From NCBI GenBank assembly GCA_965644295.1, contig CBFFRP010000363.1, forward strand, positions 62,001-126,000: DNA of 64,000 bases. The letters run 5' to 3'. Of this stretch, positions 5,199 to 62,782 are shown piece after piece. How positions within the stretch are numbered: the first letter of the stretch is position 1; each line of letters begins with the position of its first letter. The notes under the pieces were generated by a model. That model was given only the letters and a program-made list of their open reading frames with translations, had not been told where the DNA came from and did no database searches. The translations under genes were made by a program, and so were the position numbers. The stretch is from Paraphysomonas bandaiensis (taxonomy: Eukaryota > Protista > Chrysophyceae).

Positions 5199-6621
5199 TG
5201 TCTTCAAAGTGGTGGATTTGTAAAGTATGTTAATATATGTCGTAGTGTATGTGTGGAGTGACTTCGTTAAATTTTGATTTAAGGTTGTTTATGTTGATAA
5301 TAATAACTTCATTAGAATGACGTTAGAATTTGTAGTAATACCTAGAATTTGTAGTAAAATTATTTACCTTATTCAACGTACTACTAAAAGGGATCAAACC
5401 AGTAGTGGATAAAATTATTGAATATATTTAATTTAACTTCACTGTCCCAACAACAAATTTAAGGCAGGCATATAAAAGCATTGCACAAGTAAAAATGATG
5501 TAGACCTTTACCAAAAAAGCACACACGTATGTTATATATATATGAGTCGAATGAGTCGTGGGCTCTTGTCAGAATGCGTAGTGCAATGGTCACAGAGTAA
5601 ACTCCTGCCTACAGTATATGGTGTATGCACAGTTTACTTATTGTTTCACTTCACGCAAGGATTAGAATATCCGGAAAAGTTTGATTCGCACTGAGTTAGC
5701 ATCTTTCTAGAAAAAGTTTAATTCACACTGTAGAATGTGTAGAATTATTGTGGGTCAATTGCTCTTCGAACACCTGAGTGCAATCAAGGGGAATAGTGAT
5801 ACTCTATCAGCTCCCGTACGAAGATGGACACCGACCACGGTGCTTTCCATATGAATAAAGAATAAAACAGGGCAGCGATGTACTTTGTACCCTACTGCCC
5901 CACCCGTGTTCACCTTCACAAAGATTAGGAGAGATTTCTCATTACTCTGCTTGACTTATGTATATAAGATTGTGTTCGCCTTCCCATTCCTTGATAAAGA
6001 TTACGCGGAGCTTCTCGTGACCATGACTCAGTTTAGAGCTCGCATGGCATTGGATTCCCCAACTCCCCTAGAATGCACCGGGTTTTTGTAATTAGGTATG
6101 GACTATGCGAGTATTATGTAGATCTAGCTGGAGTTTGCTTGACGCCATACATCTAGATTTCAATCAAACTAGCACTTTACTAGTGAACGCTCTCCGAAAG
6201 GAACACAACCTCCAAGTGTTCATGATTGCATTGCATGCATAATGCATGCGTTGGATTGACATACGCTCTCCAACTACAGTGTAGTCAGACTATAATACAG
6301 CATTTATTCCAGAAGGATTTCCAGATGGCTGAGCATCTTTTCATAGGATATGAACACACATATCCACCCACTGTAGTCCTGTGTATAGTAGAGATGTGCT
6401 GCAGGGCGGTGCCATATGCAGGGAGATCCCTATGGAGGTATCTGTATTTCCATATGAAGTGTGAAGTGTATGTAGAAGAAAGTGTTTCCAGAGAGAACTC
6501 TACACACATTCCTATACATTACCATACTACTCTATCACCACACCATCTGCACATACACCATAACATAGTCACTGTATCTCCCCCACAGATATATCTGATA
6601 TCCTTACATTGAGATTGATCC

Positions 6622-8883
6622 ATGATGCTCTCTGGTTGTGACTGTAACTCTCTATCAGGCGCACATGTGTTCGGTGGAGTCGTTACGGGTTATATACTAA
6701 TCAGATCATGTATTCGTCGTATCAGAGAACCAAACATACCCACAGAGAACGATAAGGCCCTACGAGCGAGTATACGACAGAAGTATTCATCTAAAAGAGT
6801 CCCGGAAGATGTGGATACAGTGATTATAGGGTCCGGTATGGGGGGACTCTCATGTGCGGCTATTCTAGCTAGACTAGGCAAGAAAGTTCTAGTTCTAGAA
6901 CAACACAATGATGTTGCTGGAGGTGGGACACATCAGTTTGACCTTAATGGATTTCGATTTGACTCTGGGTTGCACTATACTGTCCCGTGGAGTGTTCCTA
7001 TATTTGCTCTAACATGTGGGAAAAAGGAGTCCGATGTATGCCCATTTGAGTTAATGGGAGACTCTAATTCAACTGTGGACAAAATTCATTTACACAATAT
7101 TCAGAATAGTTCCAATAATTTCCGTGTACCTTCGTTCGATATGCAGCTACATGAGGCTCACATGAAGCGTTTGTACAACGAATTCCCACACGATCGAAAG
7201 GCACTGGACGAATTCATGCGCATGTCGAATAGGGCAATGGACTTCGTCAAGGTTTTCCTTGGTATGCGACTGCTGCCGAAGTGGCTGCAACGAATTATGT
7301 GGAACCTAGTTCCGAGAAGTATGATGGATGTAGTATCGCAGACTGCAGAAGAAATTTTACCTCGACTAACTAGTAACAAAAAACTTATTTCCTTGCTGAG
7401 CAGCATGTGGATTGATACAGGTACATTCAGTGCTATTTGAACCAAGATGTGTGTTATGGGTAGTGCTCACTGTGAATTAATGATGGATGCACACATACTG
7501 TCTAGATATGTATTGATTGTTCTTCAGGAGCTCGTCCGGACAAAGCATCCTTCATGATGACTGCCGCAGTCTTCCGTGGTGTTTCCATGGAAGGAGGTTG
7601 TTACCCTTCTAAAGGTGCCGAAAGTATGGCAATAGAGCTCGCGCAAACTATACGTGCGCATGGTGGAACCATCCTTGTGCGAGCCAGTGTTGACGAAATC
7701 CTGACAGAAAGTGGACACGTATGTGGCGTGAGAGTTCGTCGTGCTGCCCCTAATGCCCACCCGACTAATACGTCACGCACTAGTAATGTCACGCGCCATG
7801 AAGACGTGATGGTTGTACGATGCCGACGTGTGGTTTCAGCATGCGGCTACTCCAACACATTCAACAGACTTCTGCCTGGGCACATTACCAAGAAGCACGA
7901 CATTCCTAGGACTCTCCCTGTTAAGCAATCGGCTGGCTTTGTTATGGCCAATATCGGTATAATGTTTTCCTTTTAGTGTTAAATATTAAAGTCATCATAT
8001 GCCAGGTATCAACGGAAGTCCTGAGGAATTGGATATATTTAACACCAATACATGGCATATTCCTACGGATGCATCAGACGATGCTTTTGTCCCAATGAGA
8101 GCTTACTTTGAGAGCCCCCTTGGAGACGAAAATACAGGTACGATTGACTGTTGTGTTACTGTGTATGTGTCTTTCTTTGATGAAGTTTGTTTTTAACAGG
8201 ATATCTTGGTATCCCTACCTTCATTACCTTTCCCTCAGTGAAGGACAAGGAATGGTCATCTTCTCATCCAGGTAGGGTGAGTTGCCAGATGCTGATGATG
8301 GCAGACTACTCCTGGTTTGAACGTTTTGCACACGATATGAAGAGCAACAGAGATCATGCTGTTCAAGAATACGAGAACATAAAGCGCGCGTGGGCGCGCA
8401 GAGCAGAGCAGATGCTTTTCCATTACTTCCCCAAGGTATGAGGGAACGATCATAATTGATGTTTATCATTTCAATTTTAGGCACAAGGACACGTGAGTAT
8501 GGTTGATATCAGTACTCCTCTTGCTATTGAAAATTACCTCTTTGCGGACCAGGGTATGCTTATTTGATTTCTAGATAGTACTCGTTTGATACTAATTTCA
8601 CAGGAGCTGCTGTTGGCATCGACGTTACTCCAGAGCGGTTCGTGGACCCTGTTGTTAGAGACCACCTGGATTGCGTAACGAAAATCCCCGGATTGTTTTT
8701 GACTGGTCAGGACACAGTCCTTTGTGGAGTCACCTTATGCCAGGTGAGAATATGTTTGAATGTGCCGTGGTAAATTCCATTGACTTTTTTGGTGTCTAGT
8801 TGTCTGGAGTCATAACAGCTCTTCGAATGGAGGGATTCTGTGCTGGAGTGAAAATACTTCTGAGTGCTATCCTTGCTGGATAG
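6622..8883 (+). CDS. All-trans-retinol 13,14-reductase (RetSat)/phytoene dehydrogenase-like FAD oxidoreductase
   Basis: N-terminal hydrophobic anchor; VIIGSGMGGLSCAAILARLGKKVLVLEQHNDVAGGGTH, FDSGLHY, GGCYPSKG, FITFPSVKD, STPL, IPGLFLTGQD. About 7 exons, stop TAG at 8881-8883. Confidence 0.85.
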
Positions 8884-22260: not shown

Positions 22261-23175
22261 GTATTAACATACTTCATCCATGCTTCTCTATTTAAATTCC
22301 ATACCCACATTTAGCTTTTCTTCTCACTTGATTATTTAATATATTATAAACTTTTTGCCAGTATCTCTTCAAATATTTAAACTATTTTGTATTATATAGC
22401 TGGCAATCAACCACACCATTTTAAATACGATACTCCAGGGCTGAAGGTAACTTACCCACTTACCCCATGATAAGCAAATACCAGGTTATTTAAATCGGAA
22501 GTTTATGGTAGTTGGTGAGCTATCATTGTGTAGTTGGTTATTATCAACGGGTAAACATGGAGCTATATAATCCCGGTGGCTTTACGAGTGTTCTACTGTA
22601 CCAACAGCAGGTCTGAAAAACTCATTTTGAGATGAAATAGATATATCATATATCATAGCTAATTTTAGTTTTAGTACCCATATCAAAATAACTGAGGTAG
22701 AGTGAAATAAAAATGTTGAGCAGTGGTGTCAACGTGCTAACATAAAGCACTGCTCCACCCTTTATTCTTTATTCGCAGCTACTAATACAGTAGCAATCAA
22801 TCCATGGCTTGAATAAGCACATTGTATGAACAAGTAGTTGATACGAAAACGTATAAAATCATTTGATTGAATATCATTGCAGTGCTGTAATTCGCCGTAG
22901 GATAACGCTATTCTAGTCGCAACCTCTCTTCCAAACAACTGGAAAGGAATTATATACATTCGACTCAAAATTGCAGGGTGAAGGTATTATAAAAATAAAT
23001 TTAAAAAAACATATAATTCTCTAAATTTAATATATGTGAGCGATAATGAGGTGTCAAACAAAACCAAATGTATCACAGCATGGAAGGCTATCAATGTAAT
23101 GTATATGATATACAGAAATTTAGAAAATTTCATAGATGTAGTGTGCAAATCCATAAAGACATACAAAGTCACACT

Positions 23176-26100
23176 TCACCGATTTTCGTCGAAGTACTTC
23201 GCAAGTGATTGTACATTCAGTGGTTTAGGCAGAATCTGACTTGCTCCTGCAGCTAGAAATATATCAACATCAGAAGGCATTACATTACCGGTTAGTCCTA
23301 TTATGTGACCGTTATAGTGCAGGCTCGTTCGAATTATCCGAGTAGCTTCTGGGCCACTCATACGCGGCATAATATAGTCCATTAGGATTAGATCAATAGA
23401 AGTCATTCCATCATTTTTCTGCAAGTCATTGCGAACAATATCTACTGCTTGGGCACCGTCCACCGCTTCTGTACACTCAGCACCATGGACAGTAAGTACC
23501 TTTACAACCAACTTGCGCACCAATACGGAGTCATCCACCACTAGCACCCTCTTGGCACGCAAACAGCTGTAATCTGGCGATGGCGAGGTAGAACGGCTAT
23601 GAAAACTTCCTGATCGACTAAGTGGTCGGTTACCATCCTGTTCACCCTCTTTTCGTCGGTAGGAAGGAAGACGAAAGTAAAATGTGCAGCCTTGGCCCAC
23701 ACCACCACTTGACATACCTACATCACCACGGTGAAGCTTCACAATTTTGTTAGAAACTACACGAATAACAGTTAACGTGGATATGTACAAAAGCTTATCA
23801 CTTACTCCAAAGGCCAAGACCAGACCCACCACCACCCTGCAACTCATTCGGTGAAAATTGAATAATTTCATTGAATATCTTGCACTGGTTGTCCTAAGCA
23901 GAACATATCACGTAAAGTAATCAGAAAGTACGAGGAAACAAAACCTCAGAGATTCCCACGCCGCTGTCAGTGACCTCAAGCCAGAGGGTACCACACCTAA
24001 TGTATCCCGGATCAGTAGGTTCGGATATTGGCACGGACCCTTCCGCTTCTGATATTAAACCTTCAAAGGTGTCTTCAGACATGAGATCTAAACAACATCA
24101 GTCAAGGAGATTAGTTGGGTAGCTGAGACATATATCTTTTCAGAATGTTGGGTTCGGAATGTCAAGCACACGGTGGAAATGAGAAAAACATACCACCCAT
24201 ATAGTCATCCGTTCGGATCGCTAAAGATACGGTTCCACCAGCAGGGGTAAACTTAAGTGCGTTCGATACCAAGTTTCTTATCACCTATATGAATACAAAT
24301 TACCCACCAACCACGTGTCGAATATATAAATAACTCGTGCGCACAGACCTGACAAACTTTGCTGCAATCTATATCTAAGTACCTCTCCTCTATATCCCTA
24401 TCCTCTATATTTACCACCAAAGCAATATCTTGTTGTCTAGCCTGCGTATATATCAATACTATAAAAATAGCAATCACGAGACTGTTACCTGGAGGTAGAA
24501 CGGCTTTACAGCTTGCAGAAAAAACGACGAAGCAACAACAAAGTTTCGGTATAATTCGAGGATGCCGCTCTCAAGCTTTTCATATGAAAGTAGGTCATTG
24601 AGAATGGAAACCGCGATATCGATAGAAGAGATGCAGTCCTGTAAACTCTGAACTGCATCGGCGCTACCCTCAAGTTTTCCAATCTCAGAATCCAACAGTT
24701 GAAGCCCCAGTTTTGCAATTGTAAGTGGAGTTCGGATTTCATGACTGACGTAACGTACGAAGGTCCGTTTGATAGCCAGAGTGCGCTCTGCCTGCTCGGC
24801 CGTTTCTTTCATCAGTTGAATCGTGAGTTGTCTCTGCTCATCGAGGGCACTGGCCATACGCCGTCGATTATCTGCTTCGGAGAACAGATGTTCTATCTGT
24901 AATACCATGTCCAGCCTACAGTCGTGTTTAGACAAATGGCGTATATTGATGCCACTATTGAACATATCCGACAATCTCCGAACATTCGGTACACACAACA
25001 GAATACACCGCCTTCCGTCCTCTGTGATGCAAACCTGTCCCTTGACAGCCAACGAAACACCCCTGCAAGCCTCATCCGGTAGCAGGGCTATCTCACATTG
25101 CGAGTAGTTAATAGAACAAACCTGATTCCAGTCTCTCCATAGATAAGAGTTCGGCGGGTTTCTAACTTCGAACACTTCTTGCATGTGTCTTCCTATTATT
25201 GTGGTCTTAATAAACTCTGTGAGGTGTTTCCCGTGACTGATAATCTTGAATTCACTGTCAAATGCAACGAAGAAAGGAAACAACTCCTTCATTTGATTTT
25301 CGTTTATTGACAACGGCGTGTTTTCTGTATTGGTTTCGTTCTCAGACGATTCGGTCAAGCATTCTCCAGGGTGAATACAAATGGGGTTGCTGTTGCTCCT
25401 GTTCTTCCGCTTCTTCAGTGTTGATTCGTCAGAAGAAGTCGAAGAAACAATATGCGGTGCAGGGGCTGTTCCGGAACTGAAAGGACACCTCACCGGACTA
25501 GTAACACAGCGCTGAATATCCACAGAGAGTGCCGGGCAATGTTCTCCACTTTCGTTCCCATTTTGTACAGTAAGGGTCCCATTAGGCCCATCACCACTAG
25601 TCCCGTCAATTGTTGTGCTCACAATGCGCCATGATGTGTGCGAATGGTCGACACTCTGCAGTTGCAACAATTCGAATTCCAATATGGTACGATAAAAATA
25701 CTGGGAAGCCACCTCACGCACCATACCCACCACTATAGGGTAGAGAGATGCACCACGACTGCTCTTGTAATGAAGAAACACAACATCATCTCGGTCGGTC
25801 TCCATCTCACACCTATATATGAACAAAGTATCTCAATAAACTATGTGTATACTGATAGCATATAGCATACCAGAACTGAGGTGCTTTCATATCCGGCAGT
25901 GCTACCATGAGGTGATTATGCAAAGAGTTGATGTTAGATAACCACTCATGAAATGTGTCCCCTAAACACCTCAACAGATTATCATACCCTTCCTGTCGAC
26001 AATACTGAACAAAATAAGCACCAAACTCTTCTAGTACAGTCTCTTCTGTGAGTCCAAGGAGATCCGCAGCGATAGACACTAGAGTATAGGTCGACTCGTC

Positions 26101-26226
26101 ATTATAATAATCTTCCTTATGAAAATCATCGTTTAGTTTGGATTTATTGATAATACTGTGCCATTTATCTGTTCCAAACTTTGATATGATGAGAGACTTA
26201 ATACATGCATTAATCCACCCATACAT
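23176..26226 (-). CDS. H-NOX-HNOBA hybrid histidine kinase (HNOB + HNOBA + HisKA + HATPase_c + receiver), about 891 aa
   Basis: Exons 26226-25871, 25812-24489, 24441-24349, 24284-24194, 24087-23945, 23893-23806 and 23756-23176 join in frame (2676 nt). H-NOX: MYGWIN, NINSLHNHL, PDMKAPQFWC, HYKSSR. HNOBA: LFPFFVAFD, KGQ, LCVPNV, LSKHDCRLDMVL. Kinase: VSHEIRTPL, RNLVSNALKFT, DSGVG, GSGLGL. Receiver: VVDD, ILMDYIMP, LTGN, KP. Confidence 0.93.
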
Positions 26227-27281
26227 CACTGTATACTGCTAGATATGCTGCTTGTGTGTTGTATGTGACTGATGTGAAGTGAAGTCAGCAGCTCACTTCC
26301 AACTGTTGTATTTGTACACACTTTCATTTGATGAAGTGAGAGGTACGTACATACTACTGGACAACATGCATATGGTATGGAATCGTCAGACTCCAGATAA
26401 AAATCGTCAGAAAGAGGACGAAATTATGGATGTTTTGATATTATTGGGAGCAAAAATCTAGAAATTCCGAAAAAATATCGTGTAGATTTTAGAACATCAT
26501 GTTATATATACTGCTGTATATTAGACTACTTCCTACAAGACTACGTACAGCAAATACAGATAGAGTAGATCCATTGGCATTTGATGCATGTCATAGCATC
26601 ATATCTCCGCATAATGAACGAATTGTTTGCATATGTAATCATATGTCTCTTATTGTTATGAGATACAGAGGGGGTCATTATAATCACCACTGTATTATGG
26701 TAGTTGACAGGATATCAGTGAGTATCACCGTACAATATCAGAGATACCATCACTACTCCTTCACTTGTATATGAAACATATGAACAAGTGTCACTTTATA
26801 ATATCAAGTCAATGCACGAAACTGTTGCTTGATTTGAACCTGTGAATCCTATAAGCAAGAGGTCTGCTCAATGCTCACAGAGTGATCGCCTCTTTGTGAA
26901 CAGGCGCCATCCGGATCTCAGATCGCTTATGAAGTAGATATATGCTTGATTATTGCCTGATGAGAGTGTTGAGTAATTGATAGTTCGTGGCCCTTTTTGT
27001 TGGCAGTATGCTGATAAATAATTGGTAGAGCAGTTGTGAAACCTGTGCATGGATGAGCTCAATGTTCAGCTAAGGACTCCTTTGAATTTTGTGTAGTGGG
27101 ATAATATCCTGGCACCAGAGTCTTTCCTTTTGACGAAGCGATCTATTCAATTAGAGTGAATAGTAAATTAATAAGTTTGTTTACCCTCATCTACAATATT
27201 TAATCCCTTTATATGAACAGCACATACTACAAGCTGTAAAATTCAGCTATAAATAACGAAGTTGAGACTCAATACCCATTC

Positions 27282-30321: not shown

Positions 30322-33300
30322 ATGTCTATTGGATCATTTAGAGATACGGGACTTATTCTAGCGGATTTACCACCTGATTTACAGTCTCTGAGGACTGGTG
30401 ATATTGATGTCAAGCACTATCCTCTGGATGGAGATGTGGCACACTTAAATCATGGAGCATTTGGAGGATCTCCAAATGAGTTTATTAATATAGAATATGC
30501 ACTGCGTTCTAGAGCTCATAAGAACCCTTCAGCCTTCTATGATACGCTCTGTCTGCCGTTAATTAGAGAGAGTGTGCATGTTGCACGGGACTTCTTTCAG
30601 GGCAATGTTATTCTGCAGCCCAATTGCACCATTGCGTTGAAATCTGTTCTCTCTAGTCTTGGTTCTGATGAAGGCTTGCAAGTTGCTGCATTAGCTCCTA
30701 TATACGGGGCTACATCCAAACTTCTTCGGCACCTTTACTCGGATATCACTGAGATCAAGCCAGGAATGTTCTGCGAATCTGCACAAGAGATCATACGCCT
30801 CCTTGAGCAGGCGTACGCAAGCTCGAAATTTAATGTTCTTGTGGCAGATCATGTGTCCAGTCAGTCTGCGCGAATTCTTCCCATGGCTGAGGTTGTCCAA
30901 TGGTGCCGTGAACGTGGTATCATAAGCATTGTCGATGGAACCCAGGCTTGTTGGTTCCAAAATGATGTATGGCCGGACTACTACGTGTTGAGTACCCACA
31001 AATGGCTCTGTAATATTAAAACGTGTGCTGTTATTCGTATTGACGGAGAAGCGATTGTTCCAGAGCCTGTTGGAGTATCATTTGGTCACCCTGATAAGGA
31101 TGACCGGCATTTGTGGGTGGGAATGCTTGACTATATGCCTTACATCTTACTCGCAAAGGCTCTGCGAGTGTTTTCATCCCAAGGAGCAGATATGGTCGTA
31201 GCCTCTAGTGCTATGCTCCAAGAAGGCTTTCAATACCTCGGCTGCCCTGTCTTGGGCCAGAGCTCTGCTCAACCGTCCTCTGCGCATATGCCTCGCACTA
31301 TGACACTTCTACGTGTGCACCGCTGTGAGGAAGATTTACAGAATGCACTTGAGAGGCAGGGTGTGTGCGTATCTGTCAAGAATCTTGAAGGTAATACGTA
31401 CCTGCGTGTCTCCTGCTGGACGTACAACACCTTGAAAGACTTTCAGCTGCTTGGCGAATGTCTCAACTACAAGCTCCGACTTGATGCTGCAGTTGGAAGC
31501 ACGAAAGAGGCACAGGAAACACGCAAACGCGGCCAAATACTCGAGCAAATTGAGGCACAAATGGACCTCACTGACAAACTTTACTCCCATCTAACTGTGG
31601 AGGCCTTTTTTATTCGGGCCGAGAAATTGCGGCACCCGTTAATATTTTACTACGGTCATACTGCTGTATTTTTTATAAACAAACTATGTTTAGGCCAGTA
31701 CTTGAGCGATGCGGACCGCATTGACCCAGAACTAGAGTCTCTCTGCGCTGTGGGTGTGGACGAAATGACCTGGGATGATTTAACTGTTGGTGAGTGGGAT
31801 AAAGTTAGTCCTGAGGACCAACCTAAGCAACTGGAAAGAGTACGAAACTATCGACAGCGTGTGAGGGAGATTTTACGAAATATGATACTGAACCCTTCTA
31901 ATGAGCTTAATCTCCCGATTACTCCATCCAGTATTTGGTGGGTATTTTTGATGGGTATTGAACACTCCCGCATACACATTGAGACTTCCTCTGTGATAAT
32001 TGCACAGCTCGGTGTGGAGTATGTGACGCCTTCTCTCGCTTGGCCAGTGTGCCCTCATCAGACGGACAAGGCGCCCGTCAACTCCCTCATTTCTGTCGCT
32101 GGTGGTGTTGTCACACCTGGTCGACCTCTGAATGGAACCACTTATTATGGGTGGGACAATGAATTTGGCAGTGGGAGAGGTATCCAATTGGAGTCGTTCG
32201 AGGTCAGCCAGACGCTTGTCAGCCACGCTGAGTATGCGGAGTTCGTTAATAGCGGAGGCTATAACAACCAGGAGTGGTGGTCGGCGGAGGGATGGGAATG
32301 GGCAAAAAACAAGCAAGGGCCACTATTCTGGAATGTGAACTGCAAAGGTATTAATGCTGTGCAATATTATATTTCAGCTTAATTTGTGTTATGTGATGTA
32401 TTATATTAGGTAATCGCTCTGAAGACGCCAAATTGCGCACCATAATGCATGAGATCGATCTGCCACCCTCATGGCCAGTGGTGACCAACAACTACGAGGC
32501 TGAGGCCTTTTGCAACTGGAAGTCGAGCGTATTGGGAAAACACGTTAGAATGATATCTCATCCTGAATGGTTGCTACTGGCGAAACGCTGCAAGCGGCAA
32601 GACTATAATATTAACATGCGAAAGTGGGCGAGTCCGTGTCCTGTAGATATGCATGGGGAACCATTAGGCCAGGATGGTAGCATGGTGTATGACATTCGTG
32701 GAAATCTCTGGCAACATTCCCGCTCACTTCTAACTGTTTTGCCGGAGTTCGAAGTTCACCCCTTGTATGATGATTTTACTCTACCGACTATCGATGGACA
32801 GCACAGTTTTATTCTCGGTGGCTCGTGGGCGTCACTCGGCAATTGTGCAGACGTTGAGGCGCGGTATGGATTCAGAAGGCACTTTTACCAATTTGCTGGG
32901 ATCCGGTATGTTTGCTCGAGGAACGAGGACCGCAGTGCACCTGCCCGCCTCGTTCAAGGAGAGGTGTGTATAGCACTTTCAGAGCACTATATGAATTTTT
33001 CAAGTGATATTCTGACTACCCCAAGGCCAGTTATGAACGGAATGAAGGAATTTGGTCAGTATGCTTCCACTTTTATATCAGATCAAGACAATGTGCTGGT
33101 TCTCAATGGCAGTGTAGGACGTGTGACATTTGAGATTGCTGCTCATGCTTCCCCAAAGAGTATTTTGCATACTGACCCTACTGCGAATGCTCTGGATGCA
33201 TTCCTGTATGCCCGAGAAAACGGGACGATTAGATATGAACGTACACTAGAGGGGAATTTGTGTAAAACGGAGTCGTACGATTTGCCTTCGGAATGGCTAG

Positions 33301-60400: not shown

Positions 60401-62782
60401 TCCAGCTTGAAAAACAAAGGGTCAAACGAGTAGAAGTTTTTGCCGTACGACTACAAGCTTTTGCTAGGTCAGTCCTGGCCCGTTTGAAGCTGAATGAAAA
60501 AAAGTATGAGAGAATCAGAGAGGAGAAAAAGAAGGCTGAAGAAATAAAGAAAATGACGGCGGCAGCATTGGTTGTACAACGAGTGGGAAGAGGCTTCGTT
60601 GTGAGGAAAGCAATGAAGTTCATGGCTGAGCTCGTGAGCCTCCGGCGCGAATTGAGCAGGAGAAATGTTGAAAATGTTGAGGTTTGTGGCATGTAAAGTG
60701 TAATATTTGCGCTGAACGTAATGACCATGCGTTTTAGCAAGATATGACAAATTCGTGTGGTGTAGTGTTTAACCTTTCTGTGGTACTTACAGGCGCTTCT
60801 AAAGAACATCAAAGAGTTAGGAAATACTGAGCCCCTGGCTCCGATATTTCAACGTGAAGTGGATGTTGCTAAAACTATGGTGAAACTAATAAAGATTCAA
60901 GACAAATATGTAAAAGACATAGATAAGGCGATTCGAAACGAAAGTGTAGCCGACCTTAATCGCCTGTTAGTACGCGCAGAAAGACTTGATTTGTCCACAC
61001 ACCCATCTGTAACACGTGGAAAGGAGAAGCTCAGTATGTTGCACAGGAAGCGTACAGTTATGAAAACCATGGTAGACTTTCTGCGAAGTGAGAATGATAT
61101 ATGTGAAGTCATTCCGGAGACATTAGAACAAGCTGAGGTTGGTGAACGACAGCTATTAGCGTATGTACAATACTCTCTATGGACACATTTATCTATATCG
61201 CTATCGTATCAATAGCTGCGTATGCTGCTCTCTCGTTTCTAATTGTATTAACGTATGTATAGATGCTAGGAGTGGATCCAGATTTTATTGCTAAAGTGCA
61301 GCGAATATATGAAAGTGCTTCCCCCAGACTACGCGCTCGAAACAAGCTTAGACGAGCTATTGAGACTATTGATAAGGTTCTAAGGCAGCTATTAGTACCA
61401 GTCTGATAAGTTGACATTGTGTTTAGAGTGGTGTCGTTGAAGCAATCGCGGAGGTCAGTGAGCTGCAAGATCACTATCCTAAATTTGCCGAGATGGAGCT
61501 ACGTGCTGCGAAGAGTTTGTTGCGCATGCTGGAGTTCGAGGATCAGTTGTGCGGCAGCGCTATTGCATTAGGTGTACAAAACGTTATGGGCGGAGATGTG
61601 CGATTGAGTGACGAAATCCTGGGTTTATGCCATGAGATTTGTGCGAGCGCAGATAATCGGCCTCTGTGCAAATCGTTGAGAAGTAAACTGTTACGTCTAG
61701 CGGGTAGTTCTGACGTCCTTGAAAACTGGGTAAGATGGTATAAATGGTCAAAAGTATATTGCACGTGGAAGTATCCTGAGGTCATTGACAAAGAACACAG
61801 GTAGGCACAGTCAAAAATAATTTTGAAACACGGTACACATTTGGCAATTCGGAATTTATGGTATTCTGTTGTAGCGTATTTAATGAACGCACACGTAGAT
61901 TTGTTTCCTTTTTATGCAGCAGTTCATTTTACTTCCCAAATGGGTGGGTAATAGTTTATTTCTTTGCAGGCGGTCTGAGGATTCCGTGGCGGCGGAAGAG
62001 GAGGGGGAGTTTTTTGGACTTCGCCCAGCAGATGCCCGCTCGTCAGTGTACGTCATCCGTACCTTGCATCAAGATGTCAACGTAGTTCTGGGTGATGCTC
62101 CCGCATCCATACAGGCTGCACTAGGTTAGTGATTGTTCTTTACTGATTCATCCCCACAAATATAATGTTATGTGACTCTCGATGTGTTGTGATATTGCGT
62201 TTGGGTGCATATAGGGTCATTGAATATGGGCACGAGCAGCGAGGAAGATAATCAACCGAAGTTCAATAAGCATTTGAGGCGCCGCATGGAAATGGAGAAA
62301 ACTGCATCCAAACGTGCACACGAGACTACTGGGAAGATAACTATGAAGGTAAACACACTTCAATGTATTTCACTTGCCGACTGAGTAAATGTAGGGTGCC
62401 ACTCCGAAACTTGAGGCTAAGGAAAAATTGCGTAGCTGGTAAGTGGTACTGCTGTACACCTACACTTACCATAACACTGATGTGTCCCAGCGCCGGCCGC
62501 AAGACGAGTTACTTCATGCTGGCACCCTCTGCTGAAAAACAATTGTTGGAGTCAAGGTGAGACAAGTATGATAGTCAAATTATACAGAATTAGCAGAGCA
62601 AAAGTTAAACATATCACTGTCTTTGCACCTAAGCCGACCTATATAACGATACAAGTCTTTCCATTGTCATGCGATATTATCTACTAATACGTATGTACAG
62701 GAAGGCATTGACAACACAGAAGAAAGTTGTCAAAGCAACACGAGCACGGGTCAACCGTGACAGAAAGAATGTGTGGCATTAA
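57429..62782 (+). CDS. Unconventional myosin with two IQ motifs and an atypical helical tail
   Basis: N-terminal SH3-like VWVPH; [15 protein letters not shown]; P-loop GESGAGKT and switch I NNNSSRFGK (both split by introns); DIFGFE; [13 protein letters not shown]; [10 protein letters not shown]; IQ motifs LQAFARS and VQRVGRG. Last exon ends ...KNVWH*; tail exons less certain. Confidence 0.92.

Follow-up and report, generated by a model that had tools for sequence, protein, structure and literature searches.

According to the textbook view, nitric oxide (NO) sensing in eukaryotes runs from an H-NOX domain to cyclic guanosine monophosphate (cGMP), and the control of histidine kinases by H-NOX proteins is a bacterial arrangement that acts in trans. 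In bacteria, the NO-bound H-NOX protein usually inhibits its kinase. Heme sensors fused in cis to histidine kinases are known from bacteria, as in FixL (heme-PAS), DosS/DosT (heme-GAF) and AfGcHK (globin-coupled). In addition, H-NOX proteins that are not joined to guanylate cyclases and are without the distal tyrosine have been reported in Acanthamoeba castellanii, in a paper that gives no kinase fusion or HNOBA architecture (PMC4053784). In the present study, we analysed a stretch of 64,000 nucleotides (hereafter, the window) from Paraphysomonas bandaiensis, positions 62,001 to 126,000 of contig CBFFRP010000363.1; Paraphysomonas is a colourless, phagotrophic, silica-scaled chrysophyte. A gene on the minus strand of the window, at 23176 to 26226, encodes in one chain the sensor module of the soluble guanylate cyclase (sGC) beta1 subunit, namely an H-NOX domain, a PAS-type HNOBA domain and a long helix, followed by a hybrid histidine kinase with its receiver. 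Every part is of a known kind, and the one-chain combination is uncharacterised. Searches of open-access papers and preprints brought up no account of a histidine kinase with H-NOX in a eukaryote, so that a report in a subscription journal is possible, and neither heme nor H-NOX is named in the principal survey of histidine kinases in eukaryotes (PMC6324907). A preliminary description of the locus, made from the DNA letters, likewise knew of no characterised example; this stands for the open-access literature, but the protein is no one-off, belonging to a diverse protist family with four paralogs in this genome.

The window protein finds its best match in both sequence and fold in sGC beta1. 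Like the human and Manduca proteins (PDB 6JT0, 8HBF and 6PAS), it combines an H-NOX domain carrying the histidine, the proline, the YxSxR motif and the equivalents of Cys78 and Cys122 with an HNOBA/PAS domain and a long helix. Unlike sGC, it contains no class III cyclase; the helix enters instead a DHp/CA kinase followed by a receiver, and a disordered linker of 96 residues with a Cys-Pro motif separates H-NOX from PAS. In contrast to the fixed alpha/beta pair of sGC, the protein is probably a homodimer or a dimer of paralogs. With the bacterial H-NOX/HnoK systems it shares the pairing of an H-NOX sensor with a histidine kinase, and in three bacterial loci (L002, L035 and L079) the kinase gene is HNOBA-first and receiver-last. 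However, the bacterial sensor and kinase are separate and act in trans, whereas here they occupy one reading frame and one mRNA. The diatom H-NOX-HNOBA-cyclases (Chaetoceros P0064, the nearest H-NOX, and Cylindrotheca P0119) have the Cys-Pro linker in common with the kinases, but they act through a cyclase, in some cases joined by a phosphodiesterase, rather than through a kinase and receiver. FixL, DosS/DosT and AfGcHK differ in being prokaryotic and in holding heme in a PAS, GAF or globin fold rather than in H-NOX.

The gene model is supported at the level of single bases. The coding sequence amounts to 2676 nt summed over its exons (891 codons and a stop), from the ATG at 26226 to a TGA ending at 23176, and the six introns are all short (58, 47, 64, 106, 51 and 49 nt) and bounded by GT..AG. 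When Logan transcript contigs were aligned to positions 23100-26300 of the window, two runs from one organism yielded single contigs of 3071 and 2846 nt, spanning 23100 to 26296 and 26258, respectively, and crossing each of the six joints exactly where predicted, with zero mismatches. Five of the six joints are crossed in a run from a separate study with another organism label, and three in a marine polyA metatranscriptome; other marine and hydrothermal-vent metatranscriptomes contain 20-40% of the sampled words of the gene. Single contigs cross all joints, and therefore the sensor and kinase halves share one mRNA. Cultured cells and marine samples alike thus express the gene. Moreover, a public 891-residue transcript open reading frame (ORF) from MMETSP, marked 'complete' and retrieved in the search with exon 2 (P0001), contains the translations of all exons in their order and a single residue at each split codon (n = 3). 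Searches on the gene model were run exon by exon, and the full-length analyses used P0001. The single spliced 891-residue ORF of the preliminary description is thus exact, as are the joins 25871/25812 and 24489/24441 about which it had been cautious, and the possibility it raised that the H-NOX and kinase parts are separate genes is excluded by the single contigs that cover both. The chain is eukaryotic, as shown by its spliceosomal introns and polyA transcript and by a paralog that matches a Paraphysomonas transcript at 97% identity (locus C219, compared at 96.5-97.6% identity with the MMETSP1103 protein P0002, whose taxon id, 36769, is that of the genus Paraphysomonas). The features are as follows.

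23176..26226, minus strand: whole coding region, 7 exons, 891 residues and a stop, read from the sequence and backed by transcripts
26226-25871, 25812-24489, 24441-24349, 24284-24194, 24087-23945, 23893-23806 and 23756-23176, minus strand: exons 1 to 7
25611..26226, minus strand: H-NOX domain (HNOB), residues 1 to about 186, split by intron 1 (25870-25813); from Pfam, alignment to sGC beta1 and AlphaFold2
25920-25918, minus strand: codon of the proximal His103, from alignment to sGC beta1
25314..25601, minus strand: disordered linker, residues 190-285, variable, with predicted local confidence (pLDDT) below 50
24804..25310, minus strand: HNOBA domain (sGC-type PAS) and start of the signalling helix, residues 287-455; from Pfam, phmmer and the AlphaFold2 PAS fold
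24564..24770, minus strand: HisKA/DHp domain, residues 467-535, with the His476 codon at 24743-24741; from Pfam, family alignment and AlphaFold2
23662..24360, minus strand: HATPase_c domain, residues 588-730, over exons 3 to 7; from Pfam, family conservation and Foldseek
23197..23547, minus strand: receiver, residues 769-885, with the Asp825 codon at 23379-23377; from Pfam and motif positions

All five domains were recovered in one chain by Pfam. On P0001, the matches were HNOB at residues 2-161 (2.9e-39), HNOBA at 287-455 (1.5e-20), HisKA at 467-535 (1.5e-12), HATPase_c at 588-730 (5.8e-20) and Response_reg at 769-885 (4.1e-18), all above the cut-offs, with a score of 135 bits for HNOB (PF07700) against a curated cut-off of 25.5. 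Exon by exon, the values were 7e-30 for HNOB, 2e-21 for HNOBA, 3e-13 for HisKA and 3.5e-19 for Response_reg. The architecture of H-NOX, HNOBA, kinase and receiver that the preliminary description had read from the letters is therefore present as it was described.

The residues that hold heme in sGC are preserved in the window protein. Among solved structures, exon 1 matches human sGC beta1 best (E 1.7e-23), with Nostoc H-NOX in second place. In the alignment with human sGC beta1, His103 corresponds to the proximal H105, Pro116 to P118 and the first cysteine to C78; when the alignment is extended onward, Cys120 corresponds to C122. The YxSxR motif reads Y134-K-S136-S-R138, compared with Y135/S137/R139 in beta1. 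The claim that the histidine, the proline, YxSxR and both cysteines of beta1 are all kept was consequently borne out by the pairing in the alignment. The counterpart of beta1 I145 is Ile145 and not the tyrosine of O2-type domains, and the tyrosine noticed two residues earlier is Tyr143, opposite beta1 Q143 in the HMMER alignment, so that this part of the description was also correct. The HNOBA region was aligned by phmmer to beta1 residues 212-383, and an sGC-like HNOBA/PAS domain with a helical linker behind H-NOX, as had been proposed, is seen in the Pfam match, the beta1 alignment and the AlphaFold2 helix. In a family alignment of 24 members, each only 28-40% identical to the window protein, Y134 and H476 are invariant, and His103, Pro116, S136, N599, the G1 residues and G692/G694/G696 are at least 90% conserved. 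The retention of heme-contact residues at so low an identity argues for selection on heme binding. With these residues all intact, the window protein itself would be expected to bind heme, and the isoleucine suggests that it may be selective for NO.

The output half is a complete hybrid kinase. The H box (SHEIRTP) contains the phospho-acceptor His476, and it is accompanied by an N box (RNLVSNALKF, N599), a G1 box (DSGVG, a D662-x-G-x-G pattern with D662/G664/G666), an F box and a G2 box (GSGLG, 692-696). The receiver contains D773/D774, the phospho-acceptor D825, T854 and K876. All of these boxes and the phospho-acceptor aspartate, noted before any profile search, are legible in the sequence and accompanied by Pfam matches above the cut-offs. 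The HATPase_c domain also carries a disordered insert at residues 620-641. In an AlphaFold2 model made with the 24-member family alignment, H-NOX (1-189, pLDDT about 90), PAS (290-405), DHp/CA and the receiver are confident, and residues 190-285 are disordered (pLDDT below 50). One continuous helix is predicted from 417 to 498, that is, from the end of the PAS domain through His476. When the model was compared with the PDB using Foldseek, sGC beta1 chains ranked first (E 1.6e-24, about 465 aligned columns), followed by Nostoc H-NOX (TM 0.94, rmsd 1.4-1.6 Å) and the histidine kinases HK853, DivL, ShkA and GacS. The modelled protein thus combines the first two-thirds of an sGC beta subunit with a hybrid histidine kinase behind it.

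The linker between H-NOX and PAS is unconserved except for one motif, in which Cys228 is invariant and Pro229 is found in 22 of the 24 family members (codons 25487-25482). The Cys-Pro motif is reminiscent of a thiol switch or of heme-regulatory (CP) motifs. A Cys-Pro(-Phe) motif is also found in the linkers of diatom cyclase-type relatives (P0064, P0119, P0104, P0121 and P0070), and several of these relatives have a second Cys-Pro 16-56 residues after the first.

The genomic context is consistent with an output other than cGMP. No match to the cyclase domain PF00211 was obtained in the exon pieces or in P0001, and none of the 42 cyclase-domain matches in the genome lies near any HNOB or HNOBA locus; therefore, the protein is not an sGC, and a concealed cyclase output is ruled out. 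In the profile search, no HNOBA was found in the genome outside the five HNOB loci. Within the reach of six-frame searches, the genome is without a detectable sGC. Two small HPt loci are present, which could carry a phosphorelay onward. One locus encodes the oxygenase domain of an NO synthase (C280:197980-198951, E 6e-80), and therefore the organism can probably make its own NO.

The five HNOB loci in this genome of 62.5 Mb comprise four H-NOX-HNOBA-kinase-receiver paralogs, namely the window gene (C363), C123, C219 and C291, together with C408 (L013, about 6050-7556, minus strand), which encodes H-NOX and HNOBA only and downstream of which no kinase or cyclase was detected. The intron of C408 lies at the position of intron 1 of the window gene. 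In C219 (L011) and C291 (L012), the proximal histidine is kept and the arginine of YxSxR is replaced by glutamine (YQSPQ and YKSPQ), whereas C363 and C123 retain the whole motif. By analogy, this loss recalls the heme-free alpha subunit of sGC, and heterodimers between paralogs are conceivable.

Beyond this genome, H-NOX kinases are widespread in protists. Exon 2 was searched against 1.84 billion cluster representatives, and of the best 150 representatives (50% identity) examined, at least 21 have a full H-NOX and HisKA in one chain (27 with fragments), most of the former together with HATPase_c and a receiver. Paraphysomonas and another chrysophyte, Epipyxis, account for the labelled members, and the others derive from MMETSP, EukProt, Logan assemblies and JGI metagenomes. 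In the full-length search, no protein of the same architecture from NCBI, UniRef or nr was among the matches listed, which may explain why the architecture went unnoticed. The ESM Atlas returned generic bacterial hybrid-kinase clusters only, with no large cluster of the H-NOX kinase architecture. Some family members, L001 (P0044) and L003 (P0155), are intronless genes on contigs of 7-45 kb, next to a eukaryotic-type protein kinase and a weak HROB match, and family members of this type bear prokaryote-style names in IMG.

Herein, we propose that the window gene, which is nuclear and expressed, codes for a hybrid histidine kinase located in the cytosol whose heme-based gas sensor is read through a phosphorelay, a reading to which we assign a probability of roughly 0.75. 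In the H-NOX domain, His103 would ligate a b-type heme. A diatomic gas, most likely NO and with CO as the second choice, would bind to this heme and change the conformation of H-NOX. The change might then be relayed, as in sGC, by the HNOBA/PAS domain and the long signalling helix, which would lead straight into the DHp helix bearing His476. Gas binding would thereby raise or lower the autophosphorylation of a dimeric kinase, and the phosphoryl group could pass from His476 to Asp825 in its own receiver, then to one of the two HPt proteins and finally to response regulators. Heme binding, the ligand, the sign of regulation, the dimerisation and the downstream partners in this scheme are all inferred, drawing on what is known of sGC and of histidine kinases. 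The bacterial two-gene unit, with H-NOX first and then HNOBA, histidine kinase and receiver, presents the same wiring elsewhere and is counted in favour of the proposal.

Several observations weigh against the proposal as worded. The absence of the distal tyrosine is no proof of NO selectivity; an sGC of Chlamydomonas is activated by CO, and some insect sGCs respond to O2 without a distal tyrosine. Tyr143 lies only two residues off the position aligned with the O2-type tyrosine, although it is not conserved in the family. The arginine has been lost in two paralogs, so that not every family member need bind heme. The whole-chain predicted template modelling score (pTM) is 0.44, and the interdomain arrangement is consequently not predicted. 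Finally, the spacing from a conserved aspartate to His476 ranges from 50 to 69 residues across the family (57 in 14 of 24 members), and therefore the coupling register is not uniform. The observations on the distal pocket also bear on a different signal for the same architecture, namely O2, CO or the redox state of the heme, which would make the protein an O2 or hypoxia sensor kinase like FixL or DosS. H-NOX domains as a class bind NO, CO or O2, Tyr143 is near the distal pocket, and the ligand is not readable from sequence; however, the position of the O2-type tyrosine is occupied by isoleucine, as in the NO-selective sGC beta1, the nearby tyrosine varies among relatives, and an NO synthase is encoded in the genome. 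We regard this alternative as unlikely.

It is more doubtful still that H-NOX and HNOBA form a heme-free or constitutive relic scaffold and that the kinase is regulated in some other way, for example by thiol redox, S-nitrosation or transient heme binding at the Cys-Pro of the linker. The conservation of Cys228 and Pro229 within an otherwise unconserved disordered segment would agree with such a role, as would the loss of the heme-propionate arginine in two paralogs, but every heme-contact residue is kept in the window protein and conserved across a family that is only 28-40% identical to it. As for an artefact, either the mis-joining of two neighbouring genes or bacterial contamination, the suspicion was raised only by the bacterial-looking kinase half and the prokaryote-style names in IMG, and nothing was found to support it. 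One frame is maintained over six GT..AG introns, independent runs including polyA libraries span the coding sequence, and the architecture recurs in many species and in four paralogs; with P0001 and the transcript contigs, we consider an artefact ruled out for practical purposes.

The bacterial counterpart of the protein is a gene pair rather than a single chain. On a metagenomic contig (L002), a gene for a 182-residue H-NOX protein is followed, after a gap of 31 nt, by a gene for a 577-residue HNOBA-HisKA-HATPase_c-receiver protein, and the same pair is found in a Planctomycetota genome (L035) and a Chitinophagaceae genome (L079); in the three loci, a stop codon and a gap of 9-65 nt separate the two genes. 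The eukaryotic chain is collinear with this two-gene unit. The contrast drawn earlier with bacteria, in which a stand-alone H-NOX protein regulates a separately encoded kinase, holds in that such pairs were found, but it was incomplete, as the adjacent HNOBA-HisKA-HATPase-receiver gene gives the same order of domains. No one-chain bacterial version was seen among the 80 bacterial loci found, 76 of which are ordinary hybrid kinases, a sample gathered with generic H-box patterns that is not a census. Such an arrangement is known from Nostoc punctiforme, in which the gene of the H-NOXA kinase adjoins an H-NOX gene. The H-NOXA domain of this kinase was not recovered by the PDB sequence search at E <1e-4. 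Its crystallisation is attributed to Ma et al. (2008), as cited in PMC2828450.

The two halves of the window protein have different nearest relatives. For the H-NOX domain, the highest scores are those with diatom H-NOX-HNOBA-cyclase proteins (Chaetoceros, 165 bits, 49% identity), and the kinase half reaches about 200 bits against hybrid kinases without H-NOX (e.g. from the chrysophyte-related Mallomonas), whereas it attains 57-81 bits against the HNOBA kinases of bacteria. For the kinase half, these scores lend no support to a direct origin of the entire protein by recent fusion of a bacterial H-NOX/HNOBA-kinase operon. For the HNOBA domain, the scores are similar for both sets of relatives, at 27-41 bits with the bacterial group and 24-43 bits with the diatom cyclase group. 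An H-NOX tree of 55 rows was rooted on three bacterial operon proteins; its sample was gathered with a kinase-containing query and is without animal sGC. One side of the root is made up of the eukaryote-type sequences (support 100/99), with the diatom cyclase-type proteins nested among the kinase-type ones and the kinase group of P0044 as sister to the Cylindrotheca cyclases (100/99). The window protein lies at the base of the tree without a resolved placement. Because of the starred branches and the interleaving of cyclase-linked and kinase-linked modules, we conclude that the output on this sensor module has been exchanged between kinase and cyclase at least two times, in a biased sample that gives no direction. 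The preliminary description had supposed that the cyclase was swapped for a histidine kinase and receiver; a change of output is upheld by the tree, but the stated direction is not, since kinase-linked forms are basal with the bacterial root and this sample.

In ochrophytes, the H-NOX-HNOBA module is generally promiscuous. Diatom fusions of H-NOX, HNOBA, cyclase and phosphodiesterase of about 1100-1300 residues were observed (P0333, P0346, P0347, P0352 and P0360). Many diatom proteins of about 460 residues (P0383-P0427) have H-NOX and an unannotated C-terminal half, with a tail of about 270 residues.

The family wires an sGC-type H-NOX, PAS and helix in cis to another output, in an organism with an NO synthase and without a detectable sGC. 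It offers a natural one-chain system for the path of the H-NOX signal through PAS and helix, which is debated for sGC, with phosphorylation as an easy read-out. In addition, it represents a candidate pathway from NO to phosphorelay in abundant marine grazers, whose transcripts are present in ocean metatranscriptomes, and provides material for the question of whether bacterial H-NOX/HNOBA kinase operons gave rise to sGC or the other way round. More tentatively, and with the odds somewhat against the picture as a whole, NO from the organism's own NO synthase or from bacterial prey might be read in Paraphysomonas, and probably in many ochrophytes, through one-chain H-NOX kinases and not through cGMP, replacing the NO-sGC route in this genome. 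Paralogs with and without the arginine might then pair like the alpha and beta subunits of sGC, and the Cys-Pro of the linker might add a redox or heme input.

Around the gene, the flanking ORFs scanned in the window showed no link to the H-NOX gene. The ORF at 30322-32379 of the window gives DinB_2 and FGE-sulfatase matches.

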